The notes below the pieces were generated by a model. It was not told where the DNA came from and did not search any database. It was given only the letters and a program-made list of their open reading frames with translations. This document shows positions 1-10,399 of a DNA stretch of 64,000 nucleotides, in pieces. The stretch lies in contig OX337242.1 of the NCBI GenBank assembly GCA_946965045.2, forward strand, positions 1,488,001 through 1,552,000. The letters are read 5' to 3'. How positions within the stretch are numbered: position 1 is the first letter of the stretch; every line of letters begins with the position of its first letter. Source of the stretch: Epithemia pelagica. Its lineage: Eukaryota > Protista > Bacillariophyta. Position numbers and translations under genes: made by a program.

Positions 1-99
1 TAGGTAAATTGAGTCTCAGGAAACTTTGTGAAATAGCCTTTCTTGGCCGTCTGCTTTGTTTCTTCCGACAACTAACAGCGGAGTAACTAGGATGCACGA

Positions 100-1705
100 T
101 CACTTAATCTCATCTGCAAGATCGGATTCGTCCACCACAATGGTTGATTCGTTGTCCACAATGGGTGATTCCATCGGTTCAAACAAAATTGTGTGATATT
201 CGTCATCGGTACTTGCGTTACCACCACTCCCATCTTGAACGGTACTTGGAGTAGTATCATTACCACCCGGTATTACAAGCCTTCGCCCAGATGGCAAAAA
301 TGGCAGGGAGTTTTGCCTTCTTGTTGCCAAGGCTTTGTTTACTTCCTCAACAATCAATTCTTTTGGATCTTCGGAACACCCGTGTATGTGTGGATCCATT
401 TGTAGGTACTCGTAACGAAGTCCTTTTCTTGGAGTCCGCCAATTGCGACTCACCAACGCCCCCACCAGGTAGAAAAAGGGCGGCATAGTCACAAACGACC
501 ACATCGATACGGCAGCGGCGCCAATCACTTGATACCCCAGCAAGCGAAACCCACCCCCTCGAAATAAGCCATTTTCAACCAAGTCCACTCCCGGCAAATC
601 TTTATCACCAAACAGTCCAACACATAATACTCCAAAGAGTCCCCCCATCCCATGGACTCCCAAGGCACCGACGGGGTCGTCTAAGCGGAAATATCTCTTG
701 ACCACAAAGTCGTTGGTAAGATTCCCCAACACCGCGGATACGGCACCAATCACTAGAGAGTCATACGTGTGTACAACTGCACATGTGGGAGAGCTGGCCA
801 CCAAGGCAGCCAAAATTCCATTTACCACGTCTCCCGGACGATAATATTTGCCACCGGTAATCCACTTGCTGTAAAACATGGCGATGATTCCCCCGCCGGA
901 CGACGCATTGATGGTGTTGACTCCAGCTCGTGCTGCAACAAGCCACTTATCATCTGTAATCCCAAAGGTGGAGCCACAGTTGAAACCAATCCATCCCCAC
1001 CAAAGCATAAACAACCCAAACAGCATACTGGTAGGAGATGATTCTTCAAAGTCCGACTCTGGTCGGGTGCCATCAAACCGTCCAACTCGGGGTCCCACAA
1101 ACAATATGGCCACCAAACCATTCATTGCACCGTGTAAATGGACTGCCGATTCACCGGCAAAATCATGAAATCCCAGCTCGGCCAACCACCCGTCGTCGGA
1201 CCATATCCAGTGCGCGCAAAAGGCGTAAATAACAACCGCATAAAAGGCAAAGGCTGAATAGACTTCGAATTTCATCCGCATGGCAATGCATCCACTCACG
1301 ATTGTCGCGGAAGTCGCTGCAAAACTTAGTTGAAACAAGTACCTCGAATACAAAACTCCAGAATCAATGGCCGAATTTGTTTGGTCCACCTCACCATCAG
1401 GGAAAAAGTCGCCCAAACCCATGAATGGATTGGATGGTGTTCCGTAGGCTATACCGTAACCCAACATATAAAACGCCAAAGCTCCGTATATAATGTCGGT
1501 CACATTTTTTAGCATGGACCGTACTGCATCCAATCTCGAGCAACCCGAACCCCGATTGCATGGTGAAAATCACAAAACTAGAAGTCAAAATCCATATTGC
1601 GTCGTCCTTCCATTGCTCATTTTCTTGGTCCGTCTTTAATAGGTCATCCAATACGGGACAGCTTTCACCCAATGCAACGCAACCATCCGTGAATTCGGCG
1701 CTCAT
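100..1705 (-). pseudogene. AMT: Ammonium transporter (Amt family) with a frameshifting deletion near 1516
   Basis: ORF 1397..1705 gives the N-terminus (WILTSSFVIFTMQSGFGLLEIGCST). ORF 100..1533 gives the rest (MLKNVTD..., HWIW, DFAG..VH, WWGWIGFNCGS, DDPVGALGVHG). The two frames meet at GTC C ATG with about 6 residues (NEVNI-like) missing, so this is a deletion rather than an intron. Confidence 0.88.
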
Positions 1706-2296
1706 ATCCGACTGTGTAGTCCGAGAAATGTGCAGAGAAACTAGAGACCCGAAACAAGGCTACGAAAAATTCAGCAAAAAGTATTGCCGCGGAGACGCGG
1801 CCAGTGCAACAGGCGGCAAATGATGAAGACTCTTTTTTCGTTCTCCACCAAAGCTTTGTCGATTGACTGGATTCTGAGAAGAGATGGAAAGCCCAAATGT
1901 TTTTGTTTTGTTTTTTGTTTTGTTCTTCTATTTTTCTTTGATTTTGGATGACAATAATCAAGTAGAGGAAAGAAGTGCGCGATGAGCGCGCTGCCCATTG
2001 CCCTTGCCCTCGTCACTCGTCACACGTTAAATTTCCCTATACAGATTAGAGCTATACTGATTATCATTTCTGGACATCGGAATGTCCCAGAACGATTTTG
2101 GTCATAGCATTAAATGCGTGGTATTCGAATTCGAAATTCACTCTCCGTCATTTCGGCACGACATACGAACCATCAAAGTGTCGCTTTTGCGTCGCTTTTA
2201 CAATATAGCATTTTAATAGCCGTTGTGTGACTGCCATCATGATCGTGAATGGGTGCCACATTTTTTTTCCATACATCATTGTTGAATGGCGAAGTA

Positions 2297-4083
2297 ATGG
2301 AATCGTCCACTTTGGTTGAGAACACCGTGGCCATGTCATCCACTGCTGCTGCTGACCCTTCCTCACTTTCTTCTACCTCCAGTGAATCCCTTAAGGGATT
2401 TCAAGATACATCCACGGATTGTGCCATTTGTTTATGTCCGTTGGTAGATGACGGCAACAATGATGAGGCAGAAGAACTCATTACCTTATCGTGCGGACAC
2501 CGATGGCATTTGAGATGCGTCAAGGAACAGCTTGAACATGCCCAGCCATCTCCATCCAAACGATTACTTTTCACAGGATGTCAGTGCGCCAAATGTGGAT
2601 TATTTTGTGACCATCCCAAGTTGCAGCACTTGACACGAAAAACGGACTCTCTTCGAAACATGTCGATAAGTTGGTCATGGAGCAACTTCAAATTGATGCA
2701 CCAGATGTGTGGAAAAAGCATCAACAGGTTCTGGGGAGAGCAGATGAGAAGAAGGTCAAGAAAAGCTTGGAAGCCTTGATGGACGAAGGAAGGCGAACCT
2801 ATGCCTTCTTTCTCTGTTCTGCCTGTAGGCAACCATACTTTGGAGGCACGGTAGAGTGTGCTGAGTAAGAGCTTGTACTACCTGATGGTAGTAGCGAAGA
2901 TGCAGAATCTTCAAAATCTCGCTTGTGCGTGGCATGCGCCGCTCCTCATCAACCAGTTTGTCGACAACCGCTCCTTCATCGGGGACAGTTAATTTGGAAG
3001 TGTCGCTACTGTTGCCAACCCAGCCAGTTTGTATGCCTGGGTAATGTTCATTTCTGCACCAGCTGTCACGATCGATACACGGAAAAAGTACGACAAGCGC
3101 AAGAACATAACCGAGCCAACGGCAGACGACAACGAGTCACAGTTTCACTGGAACCAATCCCATGTCCTGGGGGAGATGCTTGTCCGTTTCCCAAGCCTTC
3201 CTCGTCCAATCGCCATAAAAATGGACCAACATTGGACTGCGAGCAAGTGTACGAATGCGCATGCTGTTCTACTGCAGACGAAGCTTTGTTATTGGAACAA
3301 GCAAAAGCGAAAAGTCACAATTTACTGGTCAATCCCCATGGCACCATGGGGGCACGTGGATGGACCCAACACAACCGACTCGTTTCGTGGCAAGTGGAAA
3401 GGTGCGAAATGCCACTTGTGCTCCAGGATGCTGCTGATAATGACAACTCTGAGACGGTCACTACCAACTTTGTCAGAAGTTTTCATTGGTGTGTCATGAG
3501 TCAGCGAGTCATGTTACATGAGGTGGTGCGAGATCCTTCGGTAGTGTGTTTTGAAGTTGCCGCCTACTTTATGGCGCGAACCGATTGTCCGTCGTTGTTC
3601 AAGATGGAAGTGGTAATTCTTGGCCCTCGCCGTGACCAAGACCGTCGTGGTAGAGGAACTGCGACGGGACAGCAGCAAGCTGTATTACATCGCCAATCTA
3701 CATCTCTTTTGAATGCCCCTGTCGATTCATGGGAACGTGTCTCTCTCATGATCAAGCCTCCCGTTCTCGAAGGGGCATACGAGTTGGTCATGATCCTTCA
3801 AGGCAAGGACACGCGGTTTTGGCAAGGCCAGTACGGGTCCAAAGTGACGGGTTGTTCTGTGAGAATCGTGGCCGATACAAAAGCAGAATTGAATGACCTT
3901 CTTCTTCCACCCTCCGAGAATGGCGGGAATCCTGTCAATTCCCAGATGCAAGGACGGGCGCTATGGGAACGAGATCTATTGCATGAGAGAGAACGGCAGA
4001 TCTATTCGACGTTCAGTATCTCGTGGGCAGGGGTGATGGTTGGCATCTGTGCATTATTCCTGGTATGGGCACTCATCTTCTAG
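2297..4083 (+). pseudogene. RING-H2 + MYCBP2/PHR-type tandem-cysteine (RCR) E3 module + F-box-associated (FBA) lectin-like domain + C-terminal TM anchor; 1-nt frameshift near 2658 and in-frame TAA at 2866-2868
   Basis: Joining ORFs 2249..2779, 2671..2868 and 2923..4083 gives CAIC..LSCGHRWHLRC..CAKC, YAFFLCSACRQPYFGGTVEC, LCVAC, WKCRYCC..FVCLGNVHFCTSCHD, HNLLVNPHG..W...FVRSFHWCVMSQ...GKDTRFWQGQYGSKVTGCSV and a hydrophobic tail (ISWAGVMVGICALFLVWALIF). Confidence 0.85.
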
Positions 4084-4803
4084 CCCCTTTCCACATTCGA
4101 ACTTCCCTGCCCATTGAACTCGCTAGCTATAAGTCTGAATCGCTTGGTTTCCATGCCTATGAATTACGAATAGAGTTAGCGGGGTATAAGGCATAACTCC
4201 CCCCGACTTTGGGGGGGGCCCAGGCAGGCGAAGGGGGAAAGGGAAGGGGAAAGGAAGGACTTGCCATAGGATGAGGGATTCCACTTCCTAACGGGAAACC
4301 GATATAACCGTCGCCACTTTTTAGTCTTGGTATATCTTGAGTACACTAATTTCTATAGTGATCATTTTTCGTGGAGGGAGTTAAATGAGGAATGACAAAC
4401 CCCCCGCGGCTGGGGTACTGGGCATAATTCGAACTTTCTAACTACCCAATCAAATCTTGCCATAAAAAAATGAGCGACAGAAACAGACAGATCCTCAGTA
4501 CCAAGCTTTCTACACAGGAATCACGTATGTATCTGGCTACGTGAAATTTGTACCGGAAAATCGCTTGATTCTCAGTATAACACAAACAGTAGTACCAAAG
4601 ACCGTGGACATCTCACCATCCACATTTCATTTCTCATAATTTGGTAACCAAAACCAGTGATTACACCGAAGACACAACACCATCATCACTCCATCCGTTC
4701 CCACCACCATAGCGTTCCCACCACCATAGCATTGCCATTGCGTTGTCATACCGTTGTCATCACCAACAACAACAACAAGCCGAAAGCCACAGCGGCACAG
4801 AAA

Positions 4804-4873
4804 GTAAGTGTTTCCCTCGCCGATGGATGTGATGACAACAGTAACTAACCTTTGCTTTCTTCCATGTTTACAG
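4804..4873 (+). other. Probable spliceosomal intron in the leader upstream of ORF 5098
   Basis: GTAAGT donor at 4804, CTAAC branch at 4845-4849, pyrimidine tract, TTTACAG acceptor ending at 4873 (70 bp). Confidence 0.65.
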
Positions 4874-4887
4874 GAAAAGTGGAGTGC

Positions 4888-5080
4888 AGTAAGGCCGTTC
4901 CCAAAACGGACCCGAAACCAAATCGAAAAGTAAGGCCGTTCCCAAAACGGACCCGAAACCAAATCGAAAAGTAAGGCCGTTCCCAAAACGGACCCGAAAC
5001 CAAATCGAACAGTAAGGCCGTTCCCAAAACGGACCCGAATTCATTTTTTCAGTAAGGCCGTTTTAACGGACCCGAAACCA
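4888..5080 (+). repeat. 41-bp tandem repeat, 3 near-perfect + 2 degenerate units
   Basis: AGTAAGGCCGTTCCCAAAACGGACCCGAAACCAAATCGAAA at 4888, 4929 and 4970, with variants at 5011 and 5051. No spacers. Confidence 0.95.
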
Positions 5081-5097
5081 AAGTCCGGCCATTAACC

Positions 5098-6525
5098 ATG
5101 GCCCGGGACCGTCGACCCAAGGCGCCTCCAAAGGCGGCCTCAACAACATCCACGGCAGCAACCGCTGCTGTGAAATCTGAATCTCGTCCCAAAAAACGGG
5201 AACAAGAGGACGATGACAACTTTTCGATCTCGACTCCTATCCCAAAAAAGAAATCCAGGACAAAAGCGCCTGTGGATTCGGAGGAGGAAGAGGAGATCGA
5301 ATTCGATGATGAAAACTCAGTCGTACCAATCGACAAACCTCCCAAAAAGAAGGGGGACTCCTCAAAAACGGCCGCCTTGAAAAAGGATGAGTCGGATGAA
5401 GAGGAAGACGACGACGAAGTCGAAGATGACTGTCCTATATTCGAGGACAAGACTCTCGCTTTGTCCAACTACCTCCCCCGCCATCGGACCAAAGTCAATA
5501 ATTTTATGAACGAAAACGTTACGGCTTCCGCGGCGATCGCATTGGCAAATGCCATTGACGAGAATGTATGGTTCCCGCTGGGTCAAACGACTCCTGGCGC
5601 GGATCTATACGGGTTCAGCCTGATTGCTCAGGCCAACAAGGTGCCGTTGAAAGAAGACGAGACGCTAGCAATGGCTATGAACAACCGCATTACGTCGTTG
5701 ATCAAGCCTTTGTACAATTTTCAGAAAATCGAAGAAGCCAAGTTTAACTTGAGCGATTACAGCATCCCCACTCCAGTGGTGGTTGTCTTCCCGAGCAAAG
5801 GCGATGCCAAATACAAAGGCTTTGCTGTTTGTGGATCATGGATCTACGTTGCCAAAGAGAAGTACACGATGGAAGCAACTCAGCAGAACTTTTTGAATCT
5901 GGGTTACATGGAAATCGTGAACGAGAAAGGCGATCGTGTTCGTCACAAACACAGCCGATCCAAATTGGAAGAGACGACAAGGCGCCTCGAACAGGCTGTC
6001 ACGAGTCTAGAGAACAGTGTCTTGGACATCAACACTGCCCATTTGGAATCGAGCATCAAAACGGAAGACACCACTCGGCGCCTCGAAGAGGCTGTCGCTG
6101 GATTGGTGTCGAGTACGAGCTCGATCTTAGAGAAGCTTGAACAAGGGACAAACAAGCCCTCCGGTTCATCTGAAGCTACTCTTGCCGAGTCTCCCGACTC
6201 TAAGGGAAAGGTTGGACCTCCTCCGGAAGCAGAAGGACCGGAACAGACCGACGAGGATATGATTCCTACCATTCCTTCTCCAGCACCGGAAGCGGAAGCG
6301 AAACCGACCCCTCCCAAACCCACGGTTATCAACATCAGCCGAGGTGAAGTTGTTCTACAGAAGGGACAAATGCTCCGTGTCCGAAAGGGCATCAGGCATT
6401 TTGCCATTGTCCCCAACAAGGACTATGTCACAAAACTCCTACAAAAAGAAGAACAACGACGCAGGGAAATGGCAAACGCCGCCCTCAACCCGAATTCACA
6501 CCATGTCCATGCGTCTCGCCGTTGA
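5098..6525 (+). CDS. Unknown 475-aa protein (Lys/acidic N-terminus, two TTRRLE.AV coiled-coil repeats); probable transposon accessory gene
   Basis: Long ATG-initiated ORF convergent with the transposase-like ORF; no recognisable domain. Confidence 0.65.
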   Translation: MARDRRPKAPPKAASTTSTAATAAVKSESRPKKREQEDDDNFSISTPIPKKKSRTKAPVDSEEEEEIEFDDENSVVPIDKPPKKKGDSSKTAALKKDESDEEEDDDEVEDDCPIFEDKTLALSNYLPRHRTKVNNFMNENVTASAAIALANAIDENVWFPLGQTTPGADLYGFSLIAQANKVPLKEDETLAMAMNNRITSLIKPLYNFQKIEEAKFNLSDYSIPTPVVVVFPSKGDAKYKGFAVCGSWIYVAKEKYTMEATQQNFLNLGYMEIVNEKGDRVRHKHSRSKLEETTRRLEQAVTSLENSVLDINTAHLESSIKTEDTTRRLEEAVAGLVSSTSSILEKLEQGTNKPSGSSEATLAESPDSKGKVGPPPEAEGPEQTDEDMIPTIPSPAPEAEAKPTPPKPTVINISRGEVVLQKGQMLRVRKGIRHFAIVPNKDYVTKLLQKEEQRRREMANAALNPNSHHVHASRR

Positions 6526-6726
6526 AGAACGACGAAAAACCCTATCCTACTCCAATTTGTTATTGGAGTGGTATTTGTCATGCCACTCTACAAATGGGGA
6601 AGAAGATACGAGCACCATGTCCATGCGTCTCGCCGTTGAAGAACGACGAAAAACCCTATCCTACTCCAATTTGTTATTGGAGTGGTATTTGTCATGCCAC
6701 TCTACAAATGGGGAAGAAGATACGAG
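6499..6726 (+). repeat. Perfect 114-bp tandem duplication spanning the stop of ORF 5098
   Basis: CACCATGTCC...GAAGATACGAG at 6499-6612 and 6613-6726. Confidence 0.95.
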
Positions 6727-6888
6727 TGGGGTAAACCTACTACTTGGAATTACTCTGTAAATCCTCAATACTAATATTGCTGTTTCAACACAGTCGATAT
6801 CTCTGATAGGACTTGAAATTTTTCATGTGCTTATTATATTACTGACGATGGAAACTAAAGAAGACTCTGACGAAGTGTTGATTTAGAG

Positions 6889-6982
6889 GGGCCATGTAAT
6901 CACATGGACTCCGATGAAGAAGGCAGGGCCACGTTCTCTCGTGGACTCTGAACGAAGAAGGGCCATGTACTTACATGGACTC
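6889..6982. repeat. Three 23-bp units GGG-CCAYG-N6-CRTGG-ACTC (interrupted palindromes)
   Basis: Units at 6889, 6926 and 6960. Unit 2 changes both arms together (CCACG/CGTGG versus CCATG/CATGG). Confidence 0.85.
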
Positions 6983-9900
6983 TTCCGAACTTTGGGTCCC
7001 ATTGTTAATTCTGCGATTGGGACAACCAAGAAGATGAGGTGGGCGTCCGTTCCGATTAGGGCGTCTCACCCATTCTAAAAAAGCTTGACAGCAAATCTGT
7101 TGTTGTGCCTTGGGGCGTTTGGTACGAGCGATGTCTCTCCACGACCACGACGACGCAGATGCCTGTGAGCAAATCTCAATGGGACTCTCCCGAGTGCCCG
7201 ACATTTCAATTGCTTTCCTGACACCCTCAGGAGGAGTATATTTTACCTTATAAGGATTGGTGATCTTGACCGATGAGGGAATACCCGAAGCATCGGAGAC
7301 ACGATGCTTGGAGGCCACAGACTTTTTCGCAGGCGTCTGTTTGAATGCTTGAGAAAAAATCGACGGTGCACTCAGGACATCGATACAAACGGGCTCTTCG
7401 AAAGGATTGCCAATAGTATCCTGTGTTTTGGGTTCTTGTTGGGTTGGCACGATGGTTGCAATCTCTGCCGAAGTGTCCAATTCAATGCGATTGGTGCTGA
7501 TCGTGTCCACCTCGACACCATCACATTCCATAGAAGGTGGAAGCGAGCACGATAGCTGCGAAGGCGAGGCCGTTGGAGGAACGGACGCCCTACCCGATCG
7601 TAACTCGTGTGGCAACGGCGTTGGATTATGCCCACACGCCCGACAATAACAACGATCAGACAAAGGACTTGTCTCCACTTCGGCTTCTCTCTGGAGTTGC
7701 TCCGACAAGTACTGGGCGAAGAAACGCTCACCGTTGTCTTCGGGGAGAGGACGAGCATAGTCGAAGGGTGACACCGGATAACCAATGGATTCAGCCAATC
7801 CATTGGCGAAAGTCAAGTCACTATGATTGAAAAACTCGGGATGGTTCTTCCATCCTGAAGGAACATTGGGGCGAGAAACACTCGACTCCTCCGCCATACG
7901 GATCTTGTGACGAATCTTGGTGTTGTAACGGGCAGTGCCCACCAGATTCAATGTATCACACAGATCCGCCCTCATTCCGCAATTAGCGAAGTGGGCCAAC
8001 TGGTCGTGGTACTGCTCGACCTTGGACTCACATCGTAGCGAGATATATTCGTTGCACTCGTGTTTTGTGGAAGGTGTTGGTTTGATTACACGATAAGTTT
8101 CGTGTAAAGGCATGGCATCCTGGATGTGGACTGCGTTCTTCATCTGTTCGGTCACGGTGGTCTTCGTGTCGACAGTGAACAGCTTCTTACCAGTACTTGG
8201 ATCAGTATCGCCCTTATACTGGTCCATCCACCTCTGCAAGTTATGAGCGATCACATCCGGAGGATGTATCTGCTTCATAAGGAACTTGGAGTACTTGCGG
8301 CGGAACTCCGGTCCCGACTGCATCTCCAATATTTCAGCAGGGGAAAGAGGACCAGACCGTCCAATTTGACCCGCCTTCAATGCCTTGAGCAAGGCATTGT
8401 ATGAGTCCGGCTCGAAACCATACACGCATTCCAAGAGCTCATTAAGAGCCTTGTGGTAATGGCGATGTCCCTGGCGCATTGTTTTGATGATGCGCTGTTG
8501 GAAATGGTAGAGTCCAAGACGACCCTCCAAGGTATCTCCAAAGAGGAGTTTCCAGAACTCACACTTCTTTGGCCATGTATCGCTATACATGGAAACGGGG
8601 TTGAAACCCTTTCGACGGGCTAAACATTCAGCGGCATGAGCAAAAGACTTTGTCTTTGTGTCCTCGACACAAACGGCTGAGGCAATCTCTCCAGTCTCTG
8701 TCGCCGAATCCCAAACGGCCTTGATTCCAAGGGATTTTTTATAATTCTTGGCGACCTCCATAGTATGATCCTGGGCGAACATACTGGAGGTCGTGACGGA
8801 TTGTATCTCCCTGATACAACGATCTTTGTCCGAAACGCCATAGTTGTTGGCCGTGGAAGTCGAAGCACGGTCAAATAAATCACGGAGCGAATCTCCTGAT
8901 GGTGGGAAGGTGGGGAGATATTCGCCCGCTAACTCCGGATACAAAGGGACGCCCAAAGGGGCGTCACTTACACCAATGAGACTCTTCCATTCCGACAGAT
9001 ATTCTGTGAATCGCCGGAGATGAGTGTTGGTGATGCCAGCATAAATGGAGCGCGACAATTTGTCGGCGTTACCATATGTCAGCATGTTCTCTTCGAGTAC
9101 ATGACTGCATGCCCGGTCAAGATGGAACATCATGCCATTGTCGGCGAACTTCGGTTCGACCGGATAAGCCGACCGAACATGAATCGGAAGGGTCATGAGA
9201 ACTTTGGCAGAGTTCCCATCATATCGCATTGGGCATTTTGAACATTTGTACGACATAACAATGGCCCAGTCGGGGGGACCATTGACGTTAAAAATGGGAA
9301 ACAACTTCTTATTCTTTGAGAAGTTGCTGCGGTCTCGGCGCAATGTCCCATTATCGCAATCTGGACAGGGGATGACAATGCCAGGGAATTGGTCTTCCCA
9401 GCAAACATTGTAAATCCTCTGACCCTCAATCGAATGATAATGAGGGTCAATTGGCTGTCCATAACGGACGACCGGAATCTGGAATTCCAGTGTCTGTGGT
9501 GTGAACCAATTCTGTTCCTTGTGGTTCAATAAATGGCGGGTAACTGCCATTATTGGTAGGGGAACCCCATTCTTCTTCTCGGTTGAGGAAGAGACAAAGT
9601 CCGGGTCGGCCATTGCATCTCGCACTGCGTCGTGAAGATTTGTATGGTTGGTTCTCTGAGGAGCCACCATTTGCTGGGCGTACTCACGTACGCTCGGTTC
9701 TGCGGTCGATATGTTAAAAAAAGTCCCCGTGAAGGGCTTTTCGTTCGTAGCGGCAAGTTTCTTGTCGTTCTCTTCGGATTTCACGGTGGTTTTGTTCTTA
9801 TGCCCCTTCGTCTTTCGATTGTGGGGGCAAAGAACATGGTGTCCTCGATGCGGCTGTTTTAGCCCATTGAGTTTGGTGTAGCACATGATGCAGTCCCTCG

Positions 9901-10399
9901 AAGGGTCGAAGGCCTTTGCATCACAGTCGAGCGCATTGTCAGAGACTTTGCCAGTCATCTTCTTCTGCCCCTTATTCTGGTAGCACCGGTATTGGTACTC
10001 TTGCTTTCGTTTGATAGCAGTGGTGGCTTTTTGGCGCATCTGGCTTTGGATGCCCATTTCACCGTCTTCTGCTTCGTCCGTTGGGTTCATTCGGTCCTGT
10101 GCTCTCGCTGCTGCGTTAGCGTCAACGTAGCAGCGGAAGAAGAAAGGATCCAGAGTCGACTTGATGCCGCCCTTCGTCCGTTGGGTCGTCTCCGGAGAGA
10201 CGCCCTTTTGGCCAGTAAAGCCCATATTAGAATCCTCTTTGTCCATCCCTCTTGGTTTTGTTTTTGTTTTTAGAATTATGAGAGTAGTCGTGCGTTGTGC
10301 GTTTTTTAGAGAGCTGAGGAGGGAATTTTTCGTGTTGGCATTTTCTGGTGAACTCGGTGGGGAATCGGCATGTTCCGAATTCCTTCCGACCGGGACCAC
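6971..10399 (-). CDS. Putative DDE transposase (MULE-like/DxxH-group), 1142 aa, with Cys/His zinc-binding motifs
   Basis: Candidate catalytic D (FAQDHT), D (MYSDTWP), RLGLYHF (DxxH-equivalent position) and E (RCESKVE). Upstream CPDC...YKCSKC region resembles, from memory, DUF6729-type transposon proteins. N-terminal CxxC..HxxHxxxC and C-terminal CC..GRPPH..C motifs. Confidence 0.6.
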   Translation of the reverse strand: MVPVGRNSEHADSPPSSPENANTKNSLLSSLKNAQRTTTLIILKTKTKPRGMDKEDSNMGFTGQKGVSPETTQRTKGGIKSTLDPFFFRCYVDANAAARAQDRMNPTDEAEDGEMGIQSQMRQKATTAIKRKQEYQYRCYQNKGQKKMTGKVSDNALDCDAKAFDPSRDCIMCYTKLNGLKQPHRGHHVLCPHNRKTKGHKNKTTVKSEENDKKLAATNEKPFTGTFFNISTAEPSVREYAQQMVAPQRTNHTNLHDAVRDAMADPDFVSSSTEKKNGVPLPIMAVTRHLLNHKEQNWFTPQTLEFQIPVVRYGQPIDPHYHSIEGQRIYNVCWEDQFPGIVIPCPDCDNGTLRRDRSNFSKNKKLFPIFNVNGPPDWAIVMSYKCSKCPMRYDGNSAKVLMTLPIHVRSAYPVEPKFADNGMMFHLDRACSHVLEENMLTYGNADKLSRSIYAGITNTHLRRFTEYLSEWKSLIGVSDAPLGVPLYPELAGEYLPTFPPSGDSLRDLFDRASTSTANNYGVSDKDRCIREIQSVTTSSMFAQDHTMEVAKNYKKSLGIKAVWDSATETGEIASAVCVEDTKTKSFAHAAECLARRKGFNPVSMYSDTWPKKCEFWKLLFGDTLEGRLGLYHFQQRIIKTMRQGHRHYHKALNELLECVYGFEPDSYNALLKALKAGQIGRSGPLSPAEILEMQSGPEFRRKYSKFLMKQIHPPDVIAHNLQRWMDQYKGDTDPSTGKKLFTVDTKTTVTEQMKNAVHIQDAMPLHETYRVIKPTPSTKHECNEYISLRCESKVEQYHDQLAHFANCGMRADLCDTLNLVGTARYNTKIRHKIRMAEESSVSRPNVPSGWKNHPEFFNHSDLTFANGLAESIGYPVSPFDYARPLPEDNGERFFAQYLSEQLQREAEVETSPLSDRCYCRACGHNPTPLPHELRSGRASVPPTASPSQLSCSLPPSMECDGVEVDTISTNRIELDTSAEIATIVPTQQEPKTQDTIGNPFEEPVCIDVLSAPSIFSQAFKQTPAKKSVASKHRVSDASGIPSSVKITNPYKVKYTPPEGVRKAIEMSGTRESPIEICSQASASSWSWRDIARTKRPKAQQQICCQAFLEWVRRPNRNGRPPHLLGCPNRRINNGTQSSEESM

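Follow-up and report, generated by a model that had tools for sequence, protein, structure and literature searches.

A broken copy of a predicted RING-Cys-relay–FBA ubiquitin ligase family of diatoms and red algae in Epithemia pelagica

Background

The ubiquitin ligases MYCBP2, Highwire and RPM-1 (PHR proteins; structures 5O6C and 6T7F) carry a RING-Cys-relay (RCR) module composed of a RING finger, a linker helix and a tandem-cysteine (TC) domain. In MYCBP2 ubiquitin is relayed through an upstream cysteine (C4520) to a downstream catalytic cysteine (C4572), with H4583 as the catalytic histidine, and E4534, F4573 and F4586 form a threonine-selective pocket. The numbering used here, PDB chain index plus 4377, has been checked against the PDB chains by the residues C143, E157, C195, F196, H206 and F209. 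Reviews and a 2026 compendium of human E3 enzymes treat RCR ligases via MYCBP2 only. A second group of comparable enzymes is built on F-box proteins with an FBA domain, such as Fbs1 (FBXO2) and Fbs2 (FBXO6). The complex SCF(FBS2), together with the RING-between-RING (RBR) ligase ARIH1, attaches ester-linked ubiquitin to N-GlcNAc and to Ser/Thr of Nrf1 (PMC12203941). The present work concerns a gene that joins features of both groups, located on the + strand of a 64,000-nucleotide stretch of Epithemia pelagica DNA (contig OX337242.1, positions 1,488,001 to 1,552,000; referred to below as the window, with position 1 as its first letter).

The locus is a single-exon gene belonging to a conserved diatom and red-algal protein family. 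We read it as a broken copy of an RCR-FBA ligase family, in part with a tail anchor, which is intact in diatoms and red algae and would act by the mechanism proposed below; the probability of this reading is put at about 0.7. The RING, linker helix, TC domain, relay cysteines, histidine and zinc ligands are shared with MYCBP2. In contrast to the latter, in which the module lies at the C-terminus of a scaffold of about 4600 amino acids, the algal module is N-terminal in a protein of 440-750 amino acids, lacks the PHR, RCC1 and FBXO45-binding regions, and is linked in the same chain to a substrate-recognition domain and a membrane anchor. With Fbs1, Fbs2 and other F-box FBA proteins the family has in common the FBA beta-sandwich, the aromatic contacts and a presumed recognition of cytosol-exposed glycans. 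It differs from them by catalysis in the same chain, by glutamine in place of Lys281 and, in diatoms, by the tail anchor.

Family membership and extent

The gene is spread over three collinear pieces of the + strand. The first, in frame 2, opens with an ATG at 2249, 2297 or 2333 and runs to about 2656; the second continues from there in frame 1 and ends with a TAA at 2866-2868, and the third, in the same frame, extends from 2869 to the stop codon at 4081-4083. The pieces were searched separately, the third (2869-4080) alone and the two upstream ones in the Pfam scan only. The third piece retrieved 43 proteins of 270-666 amino acids, nearly all with RING and FBA Pfam matches; the best was P0001 of Epithemia clementina (60% identity), and the others came from Seminavis, Thalassiosira, Cylindrotheca, Nitzschia and the red alga Gracilariopsis. 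A search from the red-algal protein added Cyclotella, Skeletonema, Stephanocyclus and Fragilaria as well as the red algae Purpureofilum, Rhodosorus and Porphyra, and cluster look-ups added Amphora and Pyropia. Both centric and pennate diatoms, as well as red algae, possess intact RING-TC-FBA orthologues of 440-750 amino acids. An initial annotation of this DNA, made from its letters, had proposed a chain of RCR module, FBA domain and C-terminal transmembrane helix, to be given up if no intact orthologue existed; many intact proteins of exactly this composition were found in diatoms.

The alignment of 38 full-length members (A1) contains 53 invariant columns, including every zinc ligand, both relay cysteines and the histidine. 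As a profile, these orthologues match 5o6c with an E-value of 2.3e-31 over the whole RING, linker helix and TC domain (chain 6-238), which bears out the proposed homology to the MYCBP2 RING-TC region, and FBXO2 with an E-value of 1.4e-23. Among 1.84 billion representative sequences the profile gave 1974 matches at E <=1e-3 and 139 at E <=1e-30, and about 30 clusters at 50% identity match it end to end. Many of the other matches contain the RCR part only, at the C-terminus of proteins of 500-1800 amino acids, for example in Naegleria fowleri (named 'RCR-type E3 ubiquitin transferase' in UniProt), in Palpitomonas and in a fusion with IBR and C2 domains; animal RPM-1 was also matched, and AlphaFold DB clusters add Dictyostelium, Acanthamoeba and ciliates. 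Since RCR-only matches occur in many lineages, RCR modules are widespread in eukaryotes, and the FBA fusion is one discrete family. The fused architecture forms one AlphaFold DB cluster, represented by the Gracilariopsis protein, and one 73-member ESM Atlas cluster from Bacillariophyta labelled 'hypothetical protein'.

The RCR-only proteins of Naegleria, Dictyostelium, Acanthamoeba, ciliates and Palpitomonas resemble the algal family as stand-alone, non-metazoan RCR proteins with both cysteines kept. Unlike it, they carry the module C-terminally behind other domains and F or W after the catalytic cysteine, and have neither an FBA domain nor a tail anchor. Five protist proteins of 600-1800 amino acids (P0136, P0135, P0150, P0164 and P0167) possess a complete C-terminal RCR module with both cysteines behind unrelated N-terminal regions, one of them with IBR and C2 domains; they suggest that RCR ligases have radiated more widely than has been studied. 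The profile matches also include P0076 (1555 amino acids), P0081 (879) and P0072 (626), which contain four to five tandem FBA-like stretches and no RCR module.

A metagenome scan for close environmental relatives with an intact version gave only loci of 36-42% identity. A transfer of the family from red algae to diatoms, for example from the red-algal endosymbiont, is only a possibility.

In the literature, including the RING-Cys-relay papers since 2022, no publication was found on an RCR-FBA fusion or on RCR-FBA proteins of diatoms, algae or other non-metazoans, in agreement with the initial annotation, to which no described RCR-FBA-TM architecture was known. In the databases the proteins are named only automatically ('protein ligase MYCBP2', 'highwire', 'FBA domain-containing protein', 'hypothetical'). 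The architecture is thus public under such names, and it is built from known modules rather than being a new kind of enzyme.

The FBA domain

The assignment of the C-terminal half to the FBA domains has been confirmed at several levels. The third piece matches the Pfam family PF04300 (E 8.5e-13; 48.9 bits against a cut-off of 32.4) and, in phmmer, the FBXO2 (Fbs1) chains (E 2e-6). Its AlphaFold2 (AF2) model, with a predicted local distance difference test (pLDDT) score of 80.9, shows an Fbs1-type beta-sandwich, for which the top Foldseek match is 1umh (Fbs1; E 1.3e-12). The model of the orthologue P0003 (mean pLDDT 84.3) matches both 1umh (E 3e-15, template-modelling score 0.78, root-mean-square deviation 2.1) and 5o6c (E 1e-12).

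The residues F177, Y279, W280 and K281, which we take to be the chitobiose contacts of Fbs1, have been numbered against chains 1umi and 2e31. Their equivalents over the 38 orthologues are F or Y (37/38), Phe (37/38), Trp (37/38) and Gln (31/38), and in the window copy F, F, W and Q. The aromatic residues, whose absence would have spoken against the initial proposal, are therefore present, and Lys281 is replaced by Gln.

The domain could instead be a module for protein-protein or other ligand contacts, in which case the enzyme would be an ordinary membrane-anchored quality-control E3 with targets not defined by glycans. Several features agree with this: the loss of Lys281, an identity to Fbs1 of only 23-26%, the likeness of the beta-sandwich to many carbohydrate-binding modules of other specificity, and the fact that some FBA proteins, animal ones among them, have been reported not to bind glycans. 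Against it stand the aromatic equivalents of F177, Y279 and W280 in 37 of the 38 orthologues and the top fold matches of the FBA models, which are the sugar-bound structures of Fbs1 and Fbs2. We consider a non-lectin domain unlikely, yet still deserving serious attention.

No F-box family turned up when the window pieces were scanned with Pfam, nor among the precomputed Pfam matches of over 150 homologues; the RING-TC region occupies the N-terminus. Because an F-box is lacking, the algal family would need no SKP1/CUL1/RBX1 scaffold.

The RING-Cys-relay module

The RING finger of the first piece matches zf-RING_11 slightly below the 27-bit cut-off (E 6.4e-6, 26.2 bits). In a phmmer search of PDB sequences the third piece matches the RCR chains of MYCBP2, 6t7f and 5o6c (E 9e-7), over KCRYCC...FVCLGNVHFCTSCHD; in MYCBP2 the whole RCR module comprises residues 4378-4640. 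The initial annotation had placed both relay cysteines and the histidine at particular codons of a TC region behind the RING, and the alignment to 5o6c assigns them to exactly these codons (Table 1). All the invariant zinc-ligand Cys and His residues of the TC domain are kept in the window copy. The equivalents of C4520, C4572 and H4583 are invariant in 38/38 orthologues.

The acceptor site differs from that of MYCBP2. At the E4534 position only 22/38 orthologues carry D or E, and in the window copy, as the initial annotation had suspected, the residue is not conserved, being Ser. The residue after the catalytic cysteine (F4573) is Tyr in 37/38 orthologues and Leu in the window, and that at three positions after the histidine (H+3; F4586) is Asn in 35/38 and Tyr in the window. 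Over all fetched proteins the fused members show Tyr in 150/159 and Asn in 143/159 cases, whereas the RCR-only proteins possess F or W after the catalytic cysteine in 50/66 cases and no fixed H+3 residue. The threonine-selective pocket of MYCBP2 is not kept, being S, L, Y in the window and D/E, Y, N in the family. By sequence, the acceptor pocket is remodelled in a way specific to the fused family, with Tyr/Asn for Phe4573/Phe4586, and because of this replacement the preferred nucleophile may differ (Ser/Thr, Lys or a sugar hydroxyl).

It may be asked whether the TC-like region is only a structural zinc domain of a plain RING E3, transferring ubiquitin from the E2 directly to lysine with no cysteine relay. 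The departure from the threonine-selectivity residues E4534, F4573 and F4586 would fit such an enzyme, and relay activity is so far deduced from the sequence. However, both non-zinc cysteines and the histidine are invariant in 38 orthologues at a mean column identity of about 34% and recur in the RCR-only protist proteins, and the loop with the upstream cysteine varies in length and has a lower pLDDT in the P0003 model, as for a mobile mediator loop. A plain RING mechanism is accordingly regarded as improbable.

The C-terminal tail anchor

The predicted C-terminal transmembrane helix has been borne out as a putative tail anchor: the 19-residue sequence WAGVMVGICALFLVWALIF runs directly up to the stop codon. 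The AF2 models show a helix at 357-403 in the third piece and a C-terminal helix at 501-526 in P0003. Among the 141 proteins with all three family motifs, 71 have a hydrophobic tail, defined as a hydrophobic 17-mer (Kyte-Doolittle >=1.8) within 20 residues of the C-terminus, usually with an LP(I/V)xCFxxFAWL-like motif (in the window-homologous form, LPIVCFxLFAWL-like). A hydrophobic N-terminus was found in none of these 141 proteins within the first 40 residues.

In an unrooted maximum-likelihood tree of 62 rows the tail is restricted to one clade with an SH-aLRT (approximate likelihood ratio test) support of 100%, which holds all named diatoms; the named red-algal proteins lie outside it and have no tail. 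Inside the diatom clade its distribution is patchy, forcing at least six changes, some of which may be due to gene models that are cut short. Short proteins of the Thalassiosirales type, with about 445 amino acids, end directly after the FBA domain.

Lesions of the window copy

Two lesions had been noted initially, and both are real. With P0001 and P0003 as tblastn queries, the frame-2 high-scoring segment pair ends and the frame-1 pair begins at base 2656, in the linker helix; since the orthologues keep the same residue count between LR and EQL (LRxxVDxL), exactly one base is missing. The second lesion is the in-frame TAA in the mediator loop. The same queries detected one locus only, with no second copy of the ligase gene within the window.

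Both lesions have been compared over window positions 1-4500 with contigs from four public runs of the same organism (X1-X4), which together represent three samples and no fewer than two types of library. X1 and X2 are whole-genome DNA-like, with contigs of 8-9 kb across genes and spacers, and X4 breaks at GANTC sites, as in a Hi-C library, and provides an Illumina-type contig at 2646-2862. The X3 contigs cover 1-1895 and 2316-4135 only, with none on the flanking high-copy repeat, and X3 is therefore taken as RNA. No indel was seen between 1742 and 4184 in any of the four runs, the same analysis having detected 1-nucleotide indels at 1742, 4210 and 4211; the deletion is consequently present in the DNA and, apparently, in the transcript. 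Position 2866 is polymorphic, with C (CAA, Gln) in X2, the only sample so read, and T in X1 and X3; the TAA is counted in three of the four runs. The RNA-like contig 2316-4135 contains no joints and hence no introns.

The window copy retains 52 of the 53 family-invariant residues, the single change being S to R in NFVSS, and its branch length is ordinary (0.36, compared with 0.43 for Epithemia clementina, in the maximum-likelihood tree). Because these residues are kept and the copy looks transcribed, the inactivation appears recent. On the simplest reading, a frameshift found in every sample examined was followed by a nonsense mutation that is still segregating, both being recent, and the window copy is a very recent pseudogene that is probably still transcribed. 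The proposal of a single-chain, membrane-anchored ligase thus stands for the architecture, as represented by the intact orthologues, and fails for a working gene in this genome, where the frame is cut after the RING.

A functional gene in this organism, whose lesions would be errors of the assembly, features of a single haplotype or breaks overcome through an intron, frameshifting or readthrough, is very improbable: the intact invariant residues, the apparent transcription, the CAA of one sample and the nature of contigs, which show the presence and not the absence of alleles, would allow it, but the deletion recurs in contigs of all four runs, in which other 1-nucleotide indels were caught, the RNA-like contig has no joints, GTAAG at 2865 has no in-frame AG acceptor at a plausible distance, CTT CGA AAC is no slippery heptamer, and the orthologue spacing calls for the missing base.

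Three particular sources of the disrupted frame have been rejected. An intron across the TAA would join GTAAG at 2865 to an AG at 2891, 2894, 2899 or 2905, giving 27-41 nucleotides, of which only the 27- and 30-nucleotide versions are in frame; it is further ruled out by the jointless RNA-like contig and the alignment of the TAA to an orthologue Gln. An assembly error as the source of the frameshift is ruled out by the deletion in four read sets, and a programmed frameshift by the lack of a slippery heptamer at 2651-2659.

A similar irregularity has been observed in Epithemia clementina (JBGMNV010000045.1, L001:9888-10060). There the first CxxC of the RING (DCAICLGPL, from 9909) is off-frame, and the annotated start is an ATG at 10001. 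The shift lies in or beside a (TCG)n run at 9935-9968; an intron from GT (9925) to AG (10007) restores the frame and leaves the RING loop too short. Either this copy is damaged too, or the microsatellite has been misassembled.

The start codon is likely the ATG at 2333 rather than 2297, as the RNA-like contig begins at 2316 and the orthologue N-termini align from about 2399; the latter, MSQSPSTAAHDASSFQDTSEDCAICL in P0003, match MSSTAAADP...FQDTSTDCAICL of the window. Of the span 2297-4083 given initially, the end is retained, at the stop codon, and the start probably is not.

Table 1. Positions of the features of the ligase gene in the window
Feature	Position	Strand	Basis or remark
Probable start codon	2333..2335	+	other in-frame ATGs at 2297 and 2249
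RING finger	2420..2614	+	C42 to H106 of the frame-2 open reading frame counted from 2297; Pfam RING families
Lesion 1: 1-nucleotide deletion in RING-TC linker helix, frame 2 to frame 1	2654..2662	+	tblastn
TC domain, broken by lesion 2	2800..3270	+	phmmer to MYCBP2 5o6c/6t7f
Upstream relay Cys (TGT), C4520 equivalent	2857..2859	+	YFGGTVEC aligned to 5o6c YFGGEARC (index 143)
Lesion 2: in-frame TAA in mediator loop	2866..2868	+	aligned to first Gln of orthologue CADQQ
E4534-equivalent position, Ser	2917..2919	+	alignment to 5o6c
Downstream catalytic Cys in FVCLG, C4572 equivalent	3034..3036	+	alignment to 5o6c
Catalytic His, H4583 equivalent	3067..3069	+	alignment to 5o6c
FBA (Fbs1-type sugar-binding) domain	3310..3867	+	Pfam PF04300
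Fbs1 F177 equivalent	3481..3483	+	Phe
Fbs1 Y279/W280/K281 equivalents, F-W-Q	3817..3825	+	alignment
Hydrophobic tail (19-mer), then stop 4081-4083	4024..4080	+	mean Kyte-Doolittle about 2.4; 0 residues after

Proposed mechanism of the intact family members

From N- to C-terminus, an intact member would consist of the RING, the linker helix and the TC domain, which together form a complete RCR E3 module, followed by an Fbs1-type FBA lectin domain and, in the diatom clade, the tail anchor. The anchor would be inserted post-translationally into the endoplasmic reticulum (ER) or another endomembrane; given a tail anchor and no signal peptide, the whole enzyme is expected on the cytosolic side. There the FBA domain would capture N-glycans, for example those of retrotranslocated glycoproteins or ruptured compartments. 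The RING would bind the ubiquitin-charged E2, ubiquitin would be passed by transthiolation to the upstream cysteine of the mobile loop, and it would then be relayed to the downstream cysteine and discharged onto the bound substrate, with the conserved histidine as base. Whereas the homology, the fold, the conserved residues, the lesions with their presence in reads and the family distribution are shown by the analysis, the way in which the protein lies in the membrane, its binding of glycans, the catalytic relay and the chemistry of the acceptor are inferred.

The closest functional analogy is offered by SCF(FBS2)-ARIH1, which likewise combines an FBA lectin with a cysteine-dependent, ester-capable E3. 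By this analogy, what mammals accomplish with two E3 enzymes and a neddylated cullin may be performed in the algae by one polypeptide without a cullin, and the thioester-forming module would be of the RCR and not the RBR type.

Several points weigh against the proposed reading. RCR biochemistry is confined to metazoan modules. Glycan binding is not assured, as Lys281 is Gln in the family and some FBA proteins are reported as non-binding. The copies of the window and of Epithemia clementina depart from the family acceptor site (L or H after the cysteine; Y at H+3), and the E. clementina gene also has the frame irregularity in its RING; constraint on this lineage may have been relaxed for a longer time. 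With regard to the lesions, the Logan contigs show presence, not absence, so that an intact allele may exist at low frequency or in other strains, and the RNA nature of X3 is deduced from its coverage.

A more far-reaching version of the proposed mechanism is a speculation which we hold to be rather improbable. The intact members could be self-contained 'glyco-ubiquitin' ligases, anchored either to the ER on its cytosolic side or to the outer plastid-ER membrane. Their FBA domain would hold an exposed N-glycan, and the Tyr/Asn pocket would esterify a sugar hydroxyl, or a Ser/Thr beside the glycan, with ubiquitin. They would then be the one-polypeptide equivalent of SCF(FBS2)-ARIH1, perhaps derived from the red-algal endosymbiont.

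In the literature the RCR mechanism is regarded as peculiar to MYCBP2, a giant animal protein. The present family demonstrates that the module can be combined with other domains: two algal lineages have it joined directly to a glycan-recognition domain, and diatoms also to a membrane anchor. With a soluble part of about 450 amino acids, the family would provide a small, expressible natural system for asking whether cysteine-relay ligases ubiquitinate glycoproteins or glycans. The same system would be suited to the study of acceptor-site residues as determinants of nucleophile choice, and of the disposal of cytosol-exposed glycoproteins in algae without F-box-FBA proteins. The window copy itself represents a dated example of gene loss, with one lesion in all four read sets and the other still segregating.

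Surroundings of the locus

No synteny with the Epithemia clementina locus was found beyond the gene itself. An intact open reading frame for an ammonium transporter (Amt/Rh-type, 477 amino acids) is located at 100-1533 on the - strand, divergent from the ligase gene, and is covered by its own RNA-like contig (1-1895), which is deeper than that at the ligase locus. Directly 3' of the ligase gene, over 4200-4500, the DNA-like runs show a contig depth of 900-5700, as against about 120-170 before it, and the RNA-like run a depth of zero; this segment is a high-copy repeat, adjoining a transposon-rich region (5098-10399) described in an earlier note. Compared with the window, the contigs of X1, X2 and X3 contain an extra C after 1742, and those of X2 and X4 an extra TACC after 83; these differences are haplotype variants or small assembly errors in untranslated sequence.

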